64,000 nucleotides of DNA, taken from the NCBI GenBank assembly GCA_965603825.1, contig CBFDEM010000010.1, forward strand, positions 532,158 through 596,157, read 5' to 3'. The DNA is from Blepharisma stoltei ATCC 30299. Lineage: Eukaryota > Protista > Ciliophora. The number at the start of each line of letters is the position of its first letter. Positions within the stretch are counted from its first letter, which is position 1. Both the position numbers and the translations under genes were made by a program. The notes under the pieces are model-generated. The model was not told the DNA's origin and searched no databases. It saw only the letters and a list, made by a program, of their open reading frames with translations. Below, one piece after another: positions 16,457-64,000 of the stretch.

Positions 16457-18240
16457 TAATTATTTATATGCAGACTCAATTTATATACTACCTTATATAA
16501 AAGCTTTTAATGTGCTCTATATAGTATCAATCTTTATTGCCCTGCTGATATTTTTCCAATTCTTACCACATGGCAAATGAATATAGCATTTCAAGTCCTA
16601 GGACTGGTGTTAGCTGCTTCAGAGGCAAAATTTTATCAATCCCGATTAATTCATCTTATAATTTCACTATTTGTTATATTTTGCAATTAAATAAATTAAA
16701 TCTATAATTAATTTAGTCATTATTCTGATGAGCATGATATAAAACCACCTGCAGTCCAAAATTATTCTTCAGCTAATTTATTAAAATATATAACATTTTT
16801 CAGCTTCTTTTTCTTTAAATTAAATCTGAAAATGCCTGATCAGTTTGCATAATAAACTTTTTCTTCATAATAAATTGGTGAACTCTTCATCTCAAAACTG
16901 CATCCTCTAACATATAATTTCCCAAGAATTTTTCAGTCACTTAAATCTCCGTTATTTTCATATAAATATTCTTCATTGCTAATTGCATAAATATTTTCAC
17001 TACCAATAATAAATAATTTACATTGCGTTATTGATGGGATTGATAGATTTGAAAACGAGTCTATATCAATATCATAGATATACACTTTATTTGTGACAAG
17101 GCTCCATAAAAATACGTAATTCTTAAATAAAGGACCGACCTGCCCTGCACTTCATGCATCATAATTAGAGGCAAGTTTATACCATCGACCTTCGCTAATT
17201 TTATATCTTCATGACATATGGTGAATCCCACTTACTAAATAAACAAAGCCATCATGATAAAATGAACACCCATACTGAGACTTTTTATTCGTTGTAATAT
17301 ACTTTACGTTATTCAAAGGATCAATGATATATGAGACAGATCCATAATGATAAAATAGGCTTCCATCAGGGAGCAAACACTTTGATGCTTGAAAATGCAA
17401 CTCTTTATCTATTTTTAGCTCTATATGATCAATTGTTTTAGTTCTTGCATCAAAAATACTTACGGGCAAGTAAAACTTTAGAAAATCCTAATTTTTTTAA
17501 AGAAACCTCTCCATAAAAGAGCAAAAAGATTTTCAAATATTTTTTATATATGATTTTTATAACAAAATCTCTTGCAATTTTTAAGACATTGAATTCTCAA
17601 ATAGAAGATTTAATTCTAAAAATCAATTTTAATATAAAATTAACTCTTTTAACGAGCAATAAAGAAGGTTTGCTCCCTTGCACAGGAGAATTAAAGTTTT
17701 TGAGTTATTACTGCTTAATTTGAACTTTAGCTTATCAGATTCAAATTGTTGAGAGCTTTTGTGATATCAATTTTGATCAATTTGAAGAATGCTAGATTTT
17801 TCTTCCATATATTACAGAAATGGAAATGAAAGCTAGAAAATGAATAATAAGCAATAATTCTTATAATGACACTATAGTTCAAAGTTCGGATGGGTGTTGG
17901 CATTCTTCAGACTGGTGGTGCTCTCTAATATTTAGCTAATTTATTATCGATCTCTTTTAGTGTCCACTATCATATCGCTCCTGTCCTTCCCTCCCTGCTC
18001 CAAGGTTCCTTGCCCACACACGAGGCCCTATATAGCGTTATTCAGCTCGCCATTCGACTTCTAGCGTTAGATTTTTAAAGGGATAATCTCTAATATAAAT
18101 TCTCTTCTGATTCTTGTATTTTTATTCAAATTTTAACAGATCTTTTGAAGCTTGTAAGGTGCTACGTGAACCATTTTTGGAGCTCCAGGCGCGCAAATCT
18201 CTTAACCGCTGTTTTAGTTTGAAGATAAGAGTTATATTTT
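16457..18240 (+). repeat. Direct repeat, left copy (~1.78 kb)
   Basis: Colinear and highly similar to 21780-23476. Its first ~280 nt also recur at ~13300-13580. Confidence 0.92.
16770..17487 (-). pseudogene. 5'-truncated Kelch-like propeller ORF inside the left direct repeat
   Basis: Open with TGA=Trp (KCLLPDGSLFY..IIDP..FYHDGFVYLVSG..IYYEEKVYY..FRFNLKKKKL). An in-frame TAG lies upstream and there is no upstream ATG. Confidence 0.7.
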
Positions 18241-18421
18241 GGTAATAAATAATTTAATATGAGACTAAAATCTTAATGATAGCATATTTAAATGGAATTA
18301 CAATAAACTTTGATATTTCTTTGACATTTATTATTTATAAGAAAAGACCACGCTTTTTTTTTTTAAGTTACTCTACCTTTATATTCAAAGGGAGGTATTG
18401 ATAATGAAACAATTCAATTGA

Positions 18422-21400
18422 TTAAGATTTTTTAAATCTCTTTTCTGGCTTTTGTTCTTCAACTACATATCTTTTTCTTTTTCTGTTATTTCTTTCCTCT
18501 TCTTGTTCTCGTAACTTATCACGTATGATTTCCAAGCCGGAGTCTTTCTTTTTGATTTTTTGAATTAATCTATCTATATTTTCGTCACCAAACTCAATTC
18601 TTTTTTCTTTTGTTAAAGTAACATCATTTTCTCTACACAATATTGAACTCTGAGAAAATATTTCTCCTCTTGCAGTACTAAAATGATTATTTATATCGAA
18701 TGCAACTTTAATGCTGAATTGTTGCTCGTTTATATGAATTGCTCATTTTCCATCAACAGTATTTCTATAAAATACAATTCCGCGAATTATCATTCGTTGG
18801 AGATAGTCATAATTTGGATTTAAAGCAACTTCTATGTACTTTTTAGCGCATATTTGTCAAAGTAAATCATGAGCCTTTTCACAGACCACAGAAATTTCAG
18901 CCTCTCCTAGCTTTTTATACTCATGAATTATAGCAACATCCCCTTTTCCACGCCTTGAAATGAAAATCCCATCAAGCTTTTTTTGGAATTTGTTAGATAT
19001 CTCAAAGCCGATAGAATATTTTGGATCATTTGCTGTTAATAGTGGTATTGCACCTGCTCCGCCTACGATAGTTTGGAAAAACTTTTCACTTTTATATGTT
19101 CCATCGTTATTTTATCAAGGATTTCTTCTTGTATCGCTCTTGAAACTTCATCTTTATCCTCTAAATTTTCAACAAATTTTTCTAACCAATCATAAGAATT
19201 AATTTGATTTTCTCCTGTTATATTTAGTCATGCATTAAGCATTTTGTGGTAAAAATATCTTCCCACTTCTTTATTAGGAACTACCAAAACATCGATTTTG
19301 TGCTTATATTCATATGGAGTCAAGTATCCTGCATGAAGCAGGAGTAAATAAGCATTATTTCTTGCCCAAGGTTGATTAATAATCGGTTCTTTCAATTTAA
19401 GAAATCCAGTTTTCATTATATCAAATAATTCATCATCAGGTTTAAGAGCTTCGAATATCGAAGTTAAAAATCTATCGTTATTATTAACATCATTTCAATA
19501 TTGATTGAGAGGTCATTGGCAATTATTAGCAGCAGAGTTCAAGCAGCTTATTATCGATCGAGAGTTGTATATTTTCTGACCCCTACATTATAACCATTAT
19601 ATCAGTCTTTTATTAACGCTTTCTGATCTATTAGATGACGGTCTGAATATTCTATTAAGTGCTTATTAAGCAGCCATTCAACATCCGCTTCAGTAAATCC
19701 AAAAAATTTTGAATATGATTTTATCGAAATATTGTAAGGAAAAAAAGCATCTAAATTAGATATATCAAGCAAAGTGTCATAATAATTTCCAGCTACAATT
19801 AATTTTTTTATGCGATAATCGATATGATCGACGAGTAACGTAATGATTTTCCATAAGAGAATCTTTATTTCTTTCTGATTCTTTTGGACGAGTCCTCTAT
19901 TAAAATTTTTATCATATTCATCAATAATAACAATAACAGCTTGCCCATGAATTAGATGAAGCATATGAGCCAAATTTTTCAGTGCTGTAATTATATTTAT
20001 TTGTGAGCTGAATTGTCGATAAGTTCTAAATAGCTGAACTTCAGTAGGCAATATTATTTTATTACGATCAATAATATGTTCCAGCATCTCAACATTTCGA
20101 TTTTTATAATTCATTTTTTCTACTCCGTATTGCTCTATTATTTTCTCTAAGTACAGACAATAGGAGGAAGTGTGCTCTTGATACAGCTTTGAAATTTCTA
20201 CTTGAATTGCTTCAAAAAGGATTTCCGGAGGTATTGATTCTCAGAAAAACCCAGGAAAAGTAAACAAAATAGTCGGAATACACCCAGCAAATTGTCTATA
20301 ATGTCCATTATCAGCATTCATTATTTTCAAGCATTTTGTGCTATCCAAATTATTTAAATCAGTGTTATTTTTCCCTCCTGTAAGTAAATACAAATTTGCG
20401 AATTGCCCATTTGCATCTTGCTCTGGATTTAAAAATGCCTTTAGCATAGTTAAATTCAATGTTTTACCCCAACCTCTCGGTCTCAAAATAGCAAATTTTA
20501 GACACATATCATCTAAAATAGCTTTAATAAACATTGTTTTATCCACATAGACAGCCTTATCATCAATCATACGTTTAAAATCCCTATCACCAGTGCTAAA
20601 AAGATAAGAATTTTTGACTCTAATTGCTGATTGTGGCGTTACAGGAGACTTTTTTAGCCTTTTCTTCATGGAAATTGGTGTTTGGAAGATATTGTGGCCG
20701 GGCAATGAGCTAATCTTTAAAGATTGGATAAATTTATGCGCCATATCATTTTTGCCTTTTTCTTTAAAATCCCTTAATATGCATAATTGATTTAAGTTCA
20801 AATTGCTTAATATAATATCCGTATCATCTTCCGATATTACCCAATCTTCCATTTCTTTTTTAAGCTTGTTTAAAATTGAGTCTTTTATCCTTCCAAGCCA
20901 ACTCAACTCGAAATTTCATGAGTCTATTTCACAATTTTGTGTCAGGGTTTCAATAATACTTTGGTCTTCAAATAGCGCTGTAATTTTATAAGCTGAGTTC
21001 AAATCAAACTGAGAAAATGAATCTAAAAAGACAGATTTGCCTGTTGAAATCAGCATAATTATATTGTACATTGATAATAGGCAGCTTTGGAGGCAATGCT
21101 TATACATTTTAATGCTATGATGATCGAATATCCAATAAGAGTTGAAAAAGCCTCCAAAGGTAGCTGATTGTCCATCAGGCCCTTTATAAGAAAATTTTGT
21201 ACAAAGCAGGTACTTAAGGAGAGGAGGCAACCTATAGTTATTTCCTGATGAATCAATCGAAAAAACTAGCTCAGAAAGGTTATACAGAGGTTCTCCGTTT
21301 ATATTTATGTAGTCCTTGGGGATAATTGCCATTGTTTGCCATATGTAGTTTTTTTCTATTTGCTCATCTGCAAGATTAGAGTTTTACTTGCATCTAATTT

Positions 21401-21742
21401 TCAATAGGCTACAATAGGCCTCTTAAGTTTTTCACCATCATTTCTAATCGCCTCTTCGATTTTCTTTGTATAAGATAGCACACCATTTACTTCATCATCG
21501 ATGGCGGGAGAATTATTCAAAATAAGCTCTGAGCCTATTATTTGAATTTTGTCTTGGTAAATATGCTTAAGGGCTTCTTGAATGCCAAAGGCAGATGCAT
21601 AGCATTTTGCTTTGCTTAAACGATCATAAGTATCAAGATTGTTAAAAACGGTGTAAAGTTCCTGCTTTAAGCTATTCATATTTTTATTTATCAAACTCAA
21701 TTTATAAGAAAATGTCTTAGCCCCTTTTTCATTTAATAGCAT
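18422..21742 (-). CDS. AAA-ATPase-like (PF09820-type) + PD-(D/E)XK nuclease (PDDEXK_9-type) protein, ~1100 aa, three frame disruptions
   Basis: YVDKTMFI, Walker A RPRGWGKTLNLTML, Walker B VIVIIDEYD, FGFTEADV, (W)YNGY, IYNSRSII, LLHAGYLT, VPNKEV. The nuclease region reads SEKFFQTIVG..FE..KLDGIF..IIHEYK..(W)QICAKKY..GIVF. The pieces join via TGA=Trp plus frameshifts at ~21380, ~19580 and ~19108. Confidence 0.85.
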
Positions 21743-21779: not shown

Positions 21780-23476
21780 TAATTATTTGTATGCAGACTC
21801 AATTTATATACTACCTTATATAAAAGCTTTTAATGTGCTCTCTATAGTATTAACTTTATTGCCCTGCTGATATTTTTCCAATTCTTACAACATCGCAAAA
21901 TGAATATGGCATGTAAAATCCTAGGACTGGTGTTAGCTGCTTCAGAGGCAAAATTTTATCAATCCCGATTAATTCATCTTATAATTTCACTATTTGTTAT
22001 ATTTTGCAATTAAATAATTAAATCTATGATCAATTTAGTCATTATTCTGATGAGCATGATATAAAACCACCTGCAGTCCAAAATTATTCTTCAGCTAATC
22101 TATTAAAATACATAACATTTTTCAGCTTCTTTTTCTTTAAATTAAATCTGAAAATGCCTGATCAGTTTGCATAATAAACTTTTTCTTCATAATAAATTGG
22201 TGAACTCTTCATCTCATAACTGCATCCTCTAGCACATAATTTCCCAAGGATTTTTCAGTCACTTAAATCTCCATTATTTTCATATAAATATTCTTCATTG
22301 CTAATTGCATAAATATTTTCACTACCAATAATAAATAATTTACATCGCGTTATTGATGGGATTGGTAGATTTGAAAACGAGTCTATATCAATATCATAGA
22401 TATACACTTTATTTGTGACAAGGCTCCATAAAAATACGTAATTCTTAAATAAAGGACCGACCTGCCCTGCACTTCATGCATCATAATTAGAGGCAAGTTT
22501 ATACCATCGACCTTCGCTAATTTTATATCTTCATGACATATGGTGAATCCCACTTACTAAATAGACAAAGCCATCATGATAAAATGAACACCCATACTGA
22601 GACTTTTTATTCGTTGTAATATACTTTACGTTATTCAAAGGATCAATGATATAAGAGACAGATCCATAATGATAAAATAGGCTTCCATCAGGGAGCAAAC
22701 ACTTTGATCCATGAAAATGCAACTCTTTATCAATTTTTAGCTCTATATGATCAATTGTTTTAGTTCTTGCATCAAAAATACTTACGGGCAAGTAAAACTT
22801 TAGAAAATCCTAATTTTTTTCAATTTTTAATTCTCAAATAGAAGATTTAATTCTAAAAATCAATTTTTAATATAAAATTAACTCTTTAACGAGCAATAAA
22901 GAAGGTTTGCTCCCTTGCATAGGAGAATTAAAGTTTTTGAGCTATTACTGCTTACTTTGAACTTTAGCTTATCAGATTCAAAGTGTTGAGAACTTTTGTG
23001 ATATAAATTTTGATCAATTTGAAGAATGCTAGATTTTTCTTCCATATATTACAGAAATGGAAATGAAAGCTAAAAATGAATAATAAGCAATAATCCTTAA
23101 AATGATATTCTTAAAATGACATTATATAGTTCAAAGTTCGGATGGTTGTTTGCATTCTTCAGACTGGGTGGTGCTCTCTAATATTAATTTATTATCGAAC
23201 TCGTTCAGTGTCCACTATCATATCGCTCCCTGCTCCAAACTTCCTTGCCCACACATGAGGCCCTATATAGCGTTATTCAGCTAATCCTTCAACTTCTGGC
23301 GTTAGATTTTTAAAGGGATAATCTCTAATATAAATTCTCTTCTGATTCTTGTATCTTTATTCAAATTTTAAAAGATCTTTTGAAGCTTTGCAAGGTAGTT
23401 GGGGAACCAATTTTTGAGCTCCAGGGTGTGCAAATCTCTTGACCGCTTTTTTAGTTGAAGATAAAAGTTGTATTTT
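21780..23476 (+). repeat. Direct repeat, right copy (~1.70 kb)
   Basis: Colinear with 16457-18240, but lacks ~85 nt corresponding to ~17499-17591. Confidence 0.92.
22090..22809 (-). pseudogene. 5'-truncated Kelch-like propeller ORF inside the right direct repeat
   Basis: Near-identical to 16770-17487 (FQAS vs FHGS). Confidence 0.7.
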
Positions 23477-23630: not shown

Positions 23631-24773
23631 ATGAAACTTATGCATTTTTTCGAGCCAGAATGCAAGAATGAGGTTGAATACTCGTGCCCATGCACCTCTC
23701 CTGAAACTCTATCTTGTGAACTGCATGCTGGTAAGCATATGAAGATCCCTAGCAGAGCTCATTCTTTCAACTCAATTTTTGTAGAGCCACGTAAAGAGAC
23801 AAAAGAAGAAATTATTAAGTTTCTCACAAGAGAAAACTCAAAAAATAGTAAGTTAAGGGGAGATAATTTGCCACTCAAAGAAATTATAAAATTTGCTCAA
23901 AAACCTTCATTCTATATTTCAGATTTAGTTTACAAGGAGCAGATTCATTTGCTAAAAGATGAAATAAGAGAAATATCAACTTCAATTTGAATAGCAGAAA
24001 ATAACTCCCAAACTGTGGCTGTAAAAAAATATACTTATAGAAAGAAAAAACTTACTCGAAAATACAAAAAAGAAGCAAAATTTCTTGCTATTTTAGATTT
24101 GCTTAATCATCCATTTTTTGTAAAGTTTTATAAATTCGGCAAAAAATCATTAGAAGGACAGTTTGAGTTTTGCGTCGTTATGGAATACTGCCCTAGTAGC
24201 TTGCATAGACAAATTATGGAAAAAATTGTCTTTGGTGAAAATTCTAATTCTATCATAGCTAAAATTGTGGATAAATTATTAAGCGGATTTGTAAAGTTAA
24301 GCAGCTTAAATATTGTGCATAGAGATATAAAGCCTCAAAATATCTTAGTCTCTGAGGATGGTGAGTATAAACTAATTGATTTTGGGATTTCTGAAGTTGT
24401 TTCATCAATTTCTGAAGAAAATGAGTACTTAATTAAGGGCACACATGATTATATGTCTCCAGAACTTATTTCAGAGTTAAATAAAAATTCTCAAACGTGT
24501 GTGAAGTTTAAATATAACCTGGAAAAAGCAGATGTTTATTCATTAGGACTAGTATTTTGGAAAATTAGCACAGGTAAAAGAGTAAAAGGAATCAATCAAA
24601 TTATTTATCAAGAGGAAATGTGCGAAATTCTTAATGAAATAAAATTAAACTGACTAAGAAAAGTGCTAGAAAAAATGCTCTTGATGGATCCAGCAAAAAG
24701 ATTCACATTCAAAGAAGCTTACACATATCTGAAAGAAGATGATGATTTTATCAAAGATCTGAATCTGGCTTAA
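23631..24773 (+). CDS. Chimeric Zn-finger module + Ser/Thr protein kinase, 380 aa, intact
   Basis: The first 77 codons and ~150 nt upstream copy 815-1197. In frame across TGA 23988 to VAVK, HRDIKPQN, DFG, YMSPE and DVYSLG. Ends at TAA 24773. No GxGxxG loop. Confidence 0.9.
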
Positions 24774-24858
24774 AGTATTCGAAAGTAACCGGTAACTCTA
24801 ATTATCATATTAAAAACCATTGCAAATTTAAATTCTATTAAAGATTATTTAAATAAAA

Positions 24859-25596
24859 ATGAAAATCGTATTTTTATTAATTACTGCAATATATGCAAGC
24901 AATTTTCCTATGCTTGATCTTCAAGCATCTCTCAAAGTCCCTATATGAACCTCCAATAATTATTGTGGCTGAGCAGGGGTCTACTGTAACAGCAGTAATG
25001 AAGTCTATGCAATTTGTTTAACAGGCCTCCCATTTACAGGCGATCTTGCTGAAGGAATTTTTAGCAGGCTTCCAAAACTTTCGATTTTGGCTATCGTGAT
25101 TGACGACAATTCCCAAGCTCAAGCTTTAACTCTTCCCAGCGATCTTTGCACATTGAATTCTTTGAATCAGCTGGAACTTCACAGATTAAATATAAATACA
25201 GCATTTCCTTCACAAATTCTCAGCTGCACAAAGTTAAAAATTCTCCATATGGCTTATTGTGGATTGACAGGAACTTTGCCTGATTTCTCTAATATGAACA
25301 ACCTGGAGACGCTAGATTTGAATGGAAATAAGTTTACAGGAAGCATTTCTCAATCTATAGCAAATTTACCAAATTTAGTAACTTTGCAATTATTCAGTAA
25401 TTCACTTAGTGGAAGTCTGCCTAGCTTTGCATCAAACAACTTGGCTTCACTTGATGTAAGGAATAATGCCCTCACAGGATCAGTTCCTTCTGATTTGTTT
25501 TCTAAATCAAGCATAGACTATTTTGGGTTTGATGGAAATCAAATGACAGTTCCTGAAATTTGCAAAGATAAGCCATTTTGTATCCCGTTTTCTTAA
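24859..25596 (+). CDS. Secreted plant-type leucine-rich-repeat protein, 245 aa
   Basis: Signal peptide MKIVFLLITAIYA. LRRNT cap YCG(W=TGA)AGVYC. LxLxxNxLxGxLP repeats. Confidence 0.9.
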
Positions 25597-62070: not shown

Positions 62071-64000
62071 TTAGGGTGTTAGGGTGTTAGGGTGTTAGGG
62101 TGTTAGGGTGTTAGGGTGTTAGGGTGTTAGGGTGTTAGGGTGTTAGGGTGTTAGGGTGTTAGGGTGTTAGGGTGTTAGGGTGTTAGGGTGTTAGGGTGTT
62201 AGGGTGTTAGGGTGTTAGGGTGTTAGGGTGTTAGGGTGTTAGGGTGTTAGGGTGTTAGGGTGTTAGGGTGTTAGGGTGTTAGGGTGTTAGGGTGTTAGGG
62301 TGTTAGGGTGTTAGGGTGTTAGGGTGTTAGGGTGTTAGGGTGTTAGGGTGTTAGGGTGTTAGGGTGTTAGGGTGTTAGGGTGTTAGGGTGTTAGGGTGTT
62401 AGGGTGTGTTAGGGTGTTAGGGTGTTAGGGTGTTAGGGTGTTAGGGTGTTAGGGTGTTAGGGTGTTAGGGTGTTAGGGTGTTAGGGTGTTAGGGTGTTAG
62501 GGTGTTAGGGTGTTAGGGTGTTAGGGTGTTAGGGTGTTAGGGTGTTAGGGTGTTAGGGTGTTAGGGTGTTAGGGTGTTAGGGTGTTAGGGTGTTAGGGTG
62601 TTAGGGTGTTAGGGTGTTAGGGTGTTAGGGTGTTAGGGTGTTAGGGTGTTAGGGTGTTAGGGTGTTAGGGTGTTAGGGTGTTAGGGTGTTAGGGTGTTAG
62701 GGTGTTAGGGTGTTAGGGTGTTAGGGTGTTAGGGTGTTAGGGTGTTAGGGTGTAGGGTGTTAGGGTGTTAGGGTGTTAGGGTGTTAGGGTGTTAGGGTGT
62801 TAGGGTGTTAGGGTGTTAGGGTGTTAGGGTGTTAGGGTGTTAGGGTGTTAGGGTGTTAGGGTGTTAGGGTGTTAGGGTGTTAGGGTGTTAGGGTGTTAGG
62901 GTGTTAGGGTGTTAGGGTGTTAGGGTGTTAGGGTGTTAGGGTGTTAGGGTGTTAGGGTGTTAGGGTGTTAGGGTGTTAGGGTGTTAGGGTGTTAGGGTGT
63001 TAGGGTGTTAGGGTGTTAGGGTGTTAGGGTGTTAGGGTGTTAGGGTGTTAGGGTGTTAGGGTGTTAGGGTGTTAGGGTGTTAGGGTGTTAGGGTGTGTAG
63101 GGTGTTAGGGTGTTAGGGTGTTAGGGTGTTAGGGTGTTAGGGTGTTAGGGTGTTAGGGTGTTAGGGTGTTAGGGTGTTAGGGTGTTAGGGTGTTAGGGTG
63201 TTAGGGTGTTAGGGTGTTAGGGTGTTAGGGTGTTAGGGTGTTAGGGTGTTAGGGTGTTAGGGTGTTAGGGTGTTAGGGTGTTAGGGTGTTAGGGTGTTAG
63301 GGTGTTAGGGTGTTAGGGTGTTAGGGTGTTAGGGTGTTAGGGTGTTAGGGTGTTAGGGTGTTAGGGTGTTAGGGTGTTAGGGTGTTAGGGTGTTAGGGTG
63401 TTAGGGTGTTAGGGTGTTAGGGTGTTAGGGTGTTAGGGTGTTAGGGTGTTAGGGTGTTAGGGTGTTAGGGTGTTAGGGTGTTAGGGTGTTAGGGTGTTAG
63501 GGTGGGTGTAGGGTGTTAGGGTGTTAGGGTGTTAGGGTGTTAGGGTGTTAGGGTGTTAGGGTGTTAGGGTGTTAGGGTGTTAGGGTGTTAGGGTGTTAGG
63601 GTGTTAGGGTGTTAGGGTGTTAGGGTGTTAGGGTGGTTAGGGTGTTAGGGTGTTAGGGTGTGGGTGTTAGGGTGTTAGGGTGTTAGGGTGTTAGGGTGTT
63701 AGGGTGTTAGGGTGTTAGGGTGTTAGGGTGTTAGGGTGTTAGGGTGTTAGGGTGTTAGGGTGTTAGGGTGTTAGGGTGTTAGGGTGTTAGGGTGTTGGGT
63801 GTTAGGGGTTAGGTGTTAGGGTGTAGGGTGTTAGGGTGTTAGGGTGTTAGGGTGTTAGGGTGTTAGGGTGTTAGGGTGTTAGGGTGTTAGGGTGTTAGGG
63901 TGTTAGGGTGTTAGGGTGTTAGGGTGTTAGGGTGTTAGGGTGTTAGGGTGTTAGGGTGTTAGGGTGTTAGGGTGTTAGGGTGTTAGGGTGTTAGGGTGTT
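62071..64000 (+). repeat. Telomeric repeat (TGTTAGGG)n = (CCCTAACA)n, about 240 units
   Basis: Near-perfect 8-mer tandem array running to the window end, with the G-rich strand oriented outward. Confidence 0.98.

Follow-up and report, generated by a model that had tools for sequence, protein, structure and literature searches.

A frame-broken pseudogene of an undescribed eukaryotic DUF1703 variant in the nuclear genome of Blepharisma stoltei

Domains and genetic code of the locus

We analyzed a 64,000-nucleotide (nt) stretch of the genome of Blepharisma stoltei ATCC 30299 (the window; contig CBFDEM010000010.1 of assembly GCA_965603825.1, positions 532,158 to 596,157 of the forward strand). 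A reading of the sequence alone had placed one bacterial-type gene for an AAA-ATPase and a PD-(D/E)XK nuclease, written in the host's code, at 18422-21742. DUF1703 proteins combine PF09820 (AAA-ATPase_like) with PF08011 (PDDEXK_9), and they are defined by a Walker A motif of the RPRRFGKS type, a DEYD Walker B motif and the nuclease motifs (Knizewski et al. 2007, PMC1913061). We identified the locus as a pseudogene that belongs to an undescribed DUF1703 variant of eukaryotes. The window copy is likely a recently inactivated, frame-broken paralogue of a B. stoltei gene family with three modules, whose proteins have about 1,050-1,120 residues. The features are collected in Table 1.

The open segments of the locus were searched separately as TGA-free pieces; in our scripts each contiguous segment was translated with the published code of the organism, and the segments were kept unjoined. 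PF09820 matched above its cut-off of 26.1 bits at 20244-20915 (49.2 bits), with a further 24.3 bits at 19605-20240, and the scan of the organism's own genome with PF09820 flagged this locus too. A bacterial DUF1703 profile was built from 17 full-length bacterial proteins carrying both Pfam domains. It was collinear with the window segments: the 610-codon segment aligned to profile positions 5-285 (113.5 bits), the following segment to 285-441 (34.7 bits) and the final one to 451-549 (10.5 bits). The paralogues matched it end to end, with 175-303 bits. Both the DUF1703-type Walker A and the DEYD Walker B are present in the window copy. These results support the bacterial-type ATPase and nuclease core of the sequence-only reading, whose ordered set of Walker A, Walker B, WYNGY, nuclease motifs and basic tail does lie on the minus strand.

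The nuclease domain was compared with its bacterial counterparts at the profile level. When hhalign was used to compare the C-terminal part of the family with bacterial PDDEXK_9, the probability was 96.1% (E 3.6e-9), and the Glu of motif I, the Asp of motif II, the ExK of motif III and the Gln of motif IV were aligned. The catalytic D..ExK of the window copy is intact, as had been read. The window copy has one nuclease domain. In a fold model of the nuclease of paralogue L002, the best matches were ND1-ND2 of Wolbachia CidB (Z 10.4) and CinB (Z 9.5), clearly above restriction enzymes and Cas4-type nucleases (Z 5-6). The tail that resembles a nuclear localization signal (NLS) was found with both of its basic clusters, and basic C-terminal tails are present in paralogues too. 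Elsewhere in the genome, the only locus that passes PF08011 (59.4 bits) is a 250-codon, apparently stand-alone PDDEXK_9 gene at 427 kb of contig 56 (L013:1318-2067), which is unrelated to the three-domain clusters.

The N-terminal region of about 400 amino acids had been recorded as unrecognized. The region is present, and modeling gave it a probable identity. An AlphaFold model of the TGA-free paralogue L011, made with 20 family rows including two window pieces, reached a predicted local distance difference test score of 72 and a predicted template modeling score of 0.71. Its N-terminal domain matched the deubiquitinase (DUB) OtDUB best (6ups; Z 14.2, root-mean-square deviation 2.8 Å, 161 residues aligned), followed by SseL (Z 12.4), the CidB DUB domain (12.3), RickCE (12.3) and Ulp1 (about 9). 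The top 50 structural rows were all CE-clan or CE-related effector folds. The domain is conserved in all paralogues and was found alongside the ATPase throughout the genome search, and the window pieces align across the whole of it. Of the His-Asp-Cys triad, the window copy keeps the Asp, with Ile in place of His and Ser in place of Cys. All Blepharisma copies, including the window copy, carry a hydrophobic residue or Thr for the His and Ser for the Cys in the alignment. No match to Peptidase_C48 or any other Pfam family was obtained on the N-terminal pieces of the window or the paralogues. Since the catalytic His and Cys are replaced, the N-terminal region is, at the family level, a predicted CE-clan pseudo-protease, to which the window copy is linked by alignment at 32-47% identity. 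The environmental homologues P0106 and P0028 retain a full triad (HW...D...DCGWW), and active-protease versions of the three-domain architecture probably exist in uncultured eukaryotes.

The locus lies about 42 kb from a macronuclear contig end: the window closes (62800-64000) with TTAGGGTG telomere repeats, about 1.2 kb in all, in which a variant unit appears now and then. Both the TTAGGGTG repeat unit and the TGA=Trp code have been published for the macronuclear genome of this strain (PMC9942806). Standard-code translation of the minus strand at 18422-21742 gives many stops. The locus carries nine in-frame TGA codons, six of them on columns where the homologues mostly have Trp (from 6/9 to 15/15 homologues). 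The Trp codon of WYNGY is TGA, and 14 of 16 homologues have Trp in that column, which bears out the earlier statement on the host code. The locus is not a standard-code contaminant, given TGA as Trp, the telomere-capped ciliate contig and ciliate genes on either side.

Table 1. Positions of the features at and around the locus, in window coordinates
Feature	Position	Strand	Details
Left flanking repeat	16457..18153	minus	Kelch-propeller family gene copy, open reading frame 16765-17487
C-terminal tail with basic clusters	18422..18760	minus	TAA stop 18422-18424
KRFKKS basic cluster	18425-18442	minus	
RKRKR basic cluster	18470-18484	minus	
Fourth open segment	18425..19111	minus	
PD-(D/E)XK (PDDEXK_9-like) nuclease domain	18761..19090	minus	Motifs I-IV intact; profile comparison and fold of paralogue L002
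Nuclease motif IV, Q in LWQICAKKY	18836-18862	minus	
Nuclease motif III, ExK in HEYKK	18911-18925	minus	
Nuclease motif II, D in KLDGIF	18962-18979	minus	
Nuclease motif I, E in SEKFFQ	19073-19090	minus	
Third open segment (C)	19066..19587	minus	Helical middle of DUF1703, positions 285-441 of the bacterial profile; QKIYNS sensor-2-like motif
Frame break 3	19106..19107	minus	One base fewer than L015; non-homopolymer
Second open segment	19554..21383	minus	610 codons
DUF1703 AAA-ATPase_like module	19575..20600	minus	Pfam, bacterial profile, motifs
Frame break 2	19580..19583	minus	C4 (GGGG on the coding strand), five in L015
WYNGY	19590-19604	minus	TGA Trp codon at 19602-19604
Walker B, IIDEYD	19911-19928	minus	
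Walker A, RPRGWGKT	20460-20483	minus	
Linker between CE-like domain and ATPase	20601..20915	minus	Helical and basic, about 105 residues
CE-clan (Ulp1/DUB-like) pseudo-protease domain, predicted	20919..21604	minus	Fold from paralogue L011 and alignment
Cys position of the triad, LQSC	21063-21092	minus	Ser
Asp position of the triad, SIDSSG	21243-21260	minus	Asp
His position of the triad, YIWQ	21315-21347	minus	Ile
First open segment (A)	21359..21742	minus	128 codons (TGA=Trp); first helices and strand of CE-clan-like domain
Frame break 1	21382..21385	minus	T4 (A4 on the coding strand), five in L015
Start codon common to L015	21677-21679	minus	ATG, from alignment to the paralogue
Right flanking repeat	21780..23388	minus	Second Kelch-propeller gene copy, open reading frame 22087-22809; 91-97% identical to left repeat

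Frame breaks and the intact paralogue

A DNA search of the genome identified on contig 32 a 91%-identical copy (L015) with an unbroken frame of 1,111 codons. In the alignment, the window copy is one base short of L015 at each of its three frame changes. The motifs of a single gene at 18422-21742 are thus in place, as the sequence-only reading had it, but a single frame is not: even with TGA as Trp, the locus falls into four open segments in three frames. The gene start at 21742 was not borne out either, as the start codon common to L015 lies at 21679 and similarity to L015 begins about 45 nt upstream of this ATG. Reading from the conserved start terminates after about 107 residues. The public gene model at the locus (P0001) covers the 593-residue middle segment alone and is without the nuclease. 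At the place of the TGA Trp codon at 20241-20243 of the window copy, 12 nt are inserted in L015 (L015:2691-4013 on contig 32).

The frame changes were checked against Logan contigs from DNA runs of two studies and two probable RNA runs. At break 1, window-type contigs without the extra base were found (X8 record 24 and X9 record 32), and 21382-21385 is spanned free of differences and gaps. At break 2 (19579) the inserted base occurs in no DNA contig, and the one X8 contig with the extra base also has the other differences of L015. Break 3 is spanned without differences or gaps by X1 record 3, X8 record 19 and X9 record 28. The extra-base version was confined to contigs that also bear the paralogue's other differences. 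Assembly errors in a locus that is really intact would fit the homopolymers at two of the sites, and a 91%-identical paralogue might have misled polishing. However, the assembly was built from PacBio HiFi reads (PMC9942806), the independent contigs from the DNA of two studies and from the RNA-like runs agree with the window version, and the paralogue version forms separate contigs, so this explanation has a very slim chance. Because both public DNA contigs and probable RNA contigs show the shorter version, we consider the window copy a pseudogene. Against L015, its synonymous divergence (dS) was 0.12, and its ratio of nonsynonymous to synonymous divergence (dN/dS) was 0.76 overall and 0.25 in the nuclease, with zero in-frame stops. 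On these values the inactivation looks recent.

Another explanation is that the gene is intact, with tiny introns, programmed ribosomal frameshifting or transcript slippage undoing the three frame changes. All three changes go in the same direction, two of them fall within short homopolymers, a 20-nt stretch of the GT...AG form fits at the first site, and the copy is free of in-frame stop codons. However, an L015 with exactly one more base per site requires no such device. Sites 2 and 3 have no plausible intron, given that most introns of Blepharisma measure 15-16 nt (PMC9942806). Site 3 shows no homopolymer and no slippery sequence, and at sites 1 and 3 the RNA-like contigs run collinear with the DNA. 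We rejected introns as the cause of the frame changes, as L015 is simply one base longer at each of them, and we regard an intact gene rescued by any of these devices as highly improbable.

The RNA-like runs X8 and X9 cover the gene body (18357-21606) and not the upstream spacer. In these runs, contigs of the paralogue type exceed those of the window type three- to fourfold in depth at break 1. This suggests that the broken copy is likely transcribed, at a lower level than the paralogue.

The gene family, its surroundings and its relatives

The whole 41.46-Mb assembly of 64 contigs was searched. PF09820 matched 30 places and the N-terminal domain 26 places, at the same loci, about 24 in number. 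Most of them stand in tandem clusters on contigs 22, 40, 58, 27, 62 and 32. Intact frames, of 1,036-1,121 codons, were verified at seven loci, so that at least 7 are intact, and no fewer than nine are broken. The sequence-only reading had pictured a horizontally acquired gene; the gene is not a lone one and belongs to about 24 paralogous loci of a single clade. Subtelomeric location was rejected as a rule for the family, since loci on contigs 54, 27, 40 and 32 (C54, C27, C40 and C32) lie 33-228 kb from the contig ends. The literature on Blepharisma yielded nothing on a DUF1703-type family. At 337 kb of contig 22 (L001:847-2229) there is an ATPase-only member of 461 codons, TGA-free and without the CE-like domain or nuclease, which has the best PF09820 score of the genome (121 bits). 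A 0.8-kb ATPase fragment on contig 32 (606.5-607.3 kb, L016:1501-2303) is 87% identical to window positions 19611-20433; it adjoins a kinase gene matching window 24031-24955, a second, partial duplication that ties the two regions together.

The locus is bracketed by direct repeats of about 1.7 kb, which are two Kelch-propeller genes of a large family seen elsewhere in the window. They were rejected as termini of an element, being ordinary tandem paralogues of that family. The two Kelch frames, of 241 codons each, differ by a handful of residues, though the 3.6-kb pseudogene lies between them. The unit common to the window and contig-32 loci is almost exactly a transcription unit. On the contig-32 side, L015 is flanked (L015:742-1269 and L015:4840-5314) by inverted copies of a sequence that resembles window 24831-25417 at 85-94% identity; this window stretch is the 5' end of a gene of the leucine-rich-repeat type.

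These surroundings bear on the possibility that the gene-sized unit is a selfish mobile ATPase-nuclease cassette that inserts at new sites. The sequence that the window copy shares with L015 extends about 45 nt beyond the ATG on the upstream side and 13 nt past the stop codon. Their surroundings differ, and each copy is flanked by duplicated host DNA: direct Kelch repeats in the window, and inverted copies of DNA like window 24.8-25.4 kb on contig 32. Yet the unit has no terminal inverted repeats, short target-site duplications, transposase or reverse transcriptase, and only the Kelch paralogues flank it as repeats. Moreover, most copies stand in tandem arrays, and another pair, of 92% identity (L007/L026), has at least 387 nt of upstream flank in common. 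A mobile cassette is therefore unlikely.

An exhaustive search returned 1,997 relatives. The Blepharisma paralogues ranked first, followed by unnamed metagenome proteins of 900-1,070 residues with all three domains. Two environmental relatives are on eukaryote-like contigs, one with kinesin, Myb, MORN and PX neighbors and the other with a protein kinase. One environmental contig carries a spastin-like neighbor that shares 81% identity with a protein of Stentor coeruleus and 65% with that of B. stoltei; a Stentor-like heterotrich thus also has the three-domain family. Named S. coeruleus relatives were not listed by our word-indexed searches, which do not exclude them. Among 185,579 bacterial and archaeal species genomes, the best matches were 22-29% identical and included Legionella, Rickettsiaceae, a Rickettsia endosymbiont, Amoebophilaceae, Midichloriaceae and Wolbachia. 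The closest named bacteria were Rickettsiaceae, Alphaproteobacteria and Legionella. None of the 80 best bacterial loci had a CE-like domain beside DUF1703. Unusual relatives include a Hydra vulgaris protein of 681 residues, an ankyrin-repeat fusion of 1,166 residues and a protein of 5,114 residues with four ATPase-like stretches (P0002, P0345 and P0107, in that order).

A maximum-likelihood tree of 92 rows, most of them without taxonomy, was made by a quick search with support from the Shimodaira-Hasegawa-like approximate likelihood ratio test and was left unrooted; near-duplicates (at least 60% identity) and rows without the full core were left out. All Blepharisma copies formed one clade (98), nested in an otherwise environmental clade with three-domain proteins (98). 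The sister group (84) contained sequences from Rickettsiaceae and Alphaproteobacteria metagenome-assembled genomes and one Hydra protein. Legionella and Thiotrichales came next, and gut and free-living bacteria were on the opposite side. Both the searches and the tree confirm that the nearest named bacterial relatives are intracellular bacteria. The bacterial-type core near Rickettsiaceae and Legionella thus stands, while a recent, lone acquisition does not fit the three-domain clade and the low identity. As bacterial identity reaches 22-29% at best and three-domain proteins from eukaryote-like contigs stand closest, any transfer would be ancient, and either direction would be compatible with the unrooted tree.

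In favor of a recent bacterial transfer or contamination is the DUF1703 core, which is overwhelmingly prokaryotic (PMC6387759, PMC1913061). Such an origin is refuted by the TGA codons at conserved Trp positions, the contig capped by Blepharisma-type telomere repeats, the single clade of about 24 loci and a top bacterial identity of just 22-29%. The lack of the N-terminal domain in the best bacterial loci argues in the same direction, and the chance of such an origin is negligible.

Comparison with known systems and proposed role

The Blepharisma proteins resemble bacterial DUF1703 proteins in the collinear order of ATPase, helical middle and nuclease, in the RPRxxGK[ST] Walker A, DEYD Walker B and nuclease motifs I-IV, and in their lineage-specific expansion; a 25-copy expansion of DUF1703 has been reported in Cardinium cCpun (PMC6387759). 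Unlike the bacterial proteins, they are encoded by eukaryotic nuclear genes with TGA as Trp. With their additional N-terminal CE-clan domain, linker and basic tail they gain about 500 residues, and their nuclease half scores below the Pfam threshold.

The second comparison is with symbiont toxins. CidB and CinB are toxins of the cytoplasmic-incompatibility type from Wolbachia and Rickettsia, where chimeric toxins with a CE protease and dual nucleases have also been described (Gillespie et al. 2018, PMC6133264). Like these, the Blepharisma proteins would join a CE-clan DUB-type domain and a PD-(D/E)XK domain in one polypeptide, and both modules have structural matches among them. However, the two domains come in reverse order with an AAA-like ATPase between them, and there is one nuclease domain rather than two. 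The protease appears dead and the nuclease motifs are intact, whereas CidB shows the opposite, and sequence similarity to CidB and CinB is undetectable. The N-terminal fold also resembles that of the bacterial CE-clan effector DUBs OtDUB, SseL, RickCE and ChlaDUB (Z 11-14 over about 160 residues), from which the Blepharisma copies differ in their replaced catalytic His and Cys and in having no Peptidase_C48 match.

We tentatively propose a mechanism for the intact members, which we consider possible, somewhat short of an even chance. Their domains run from the CE-clan domain, whose catalytic His and Cys are lost, through the DUF1703 AAA-ATPase-like module (RPRxxGK[ST], DEYD), to the PD-(D/E)XK nuclease with its NLS-like tail. 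They may be DNA nucleases directed to the nucleus and gated by nucleoside triphosphates (NTPs). The dead protease domain might serve as a sensor or docking module that binds ubiquitin, ubiquitin-like proteins or peptides. Tandem duplication and subsequent decay would drive the turnover of the family, in the manner of immune-like or toxin-like conflict genes. A conflict-type role is suggested by the tandem birth and death of the genes, their relaxed constraint, and end domains resembling the protease and nuclease modules of symbiont toxins (PMC6133264).

Several points weigh against our account of the locus and the family. Both structure models were made on paralogues (L011 and L002), to which the window copy is linked by alignment at 32-47% and about 27% identity. 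PF08011 gave no match on the window pieces and stayed below its gathering score in every paralogue tested (best 15.8 against 25.5 bits), so that the nuclease assignment rests on the profile-profile comparison and the predicted fold; the PDDEXK_9 label of the sequence-only reading holds by the former and fails by the Pfam threshold. The intact sister L015 has DGYD, in contrast to DEYD in the window copy and most paralogues, and an intact frame is thus no guarantee of an active ATPase. That runs X8 and X9 are RNA is the guess of a tool, and the likely copy-specific transcription rests on contigs. We know of no biochemical activity for any DUF1703 protein. DUF1703 was found neither in the PADLOC defense models nor in a sequence search of the PDB.

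Alternatively, the family could be a developmental nuclease for programmed DNA elimination rather than a conflict system. A nuclear-type nuclease would suit an organism with massive DNA elimination, but high turnover, frequent pseudogenes and relaxed constraint would be unusual for core developmental machinery, and such a role seems doubtful. A wider form of the conflict proposal can be offered as a speculation of rather low probability. It holds that an undescribed heterotrich family, with a CE-clan (pseudo)deubiquitinase, a DUF1703 ATPase and a CinB-like nuclease, is the nuclear-genome counterpart, possibly source or sink, of the protease and nuclease toxin modules of Rickettsiales and Legionellales. 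Its members would act as NTP-gated nuclear nucleases in an immune-like or toxin-antidote conflict, of which the window copy would be a recent casualty.

The value of the window copy itself is as evidence of the birth-and-death dynamics of the family only. DUF1703 is widespread in bacteria and expanded in some intracellular symbionts, and the eukaryotic clade, with its CE-clan addition, its kept nuclease motifs and about two dozen nuclear genes in fast turnover, would offer a second, tractable setting in which to ask what the ATPase-nuclease does. It also bears on the question, raised by the cytoplasmic-incompatibility toxins, of protease and nuclease modules moving between protist hosts and intracellular bacteria.

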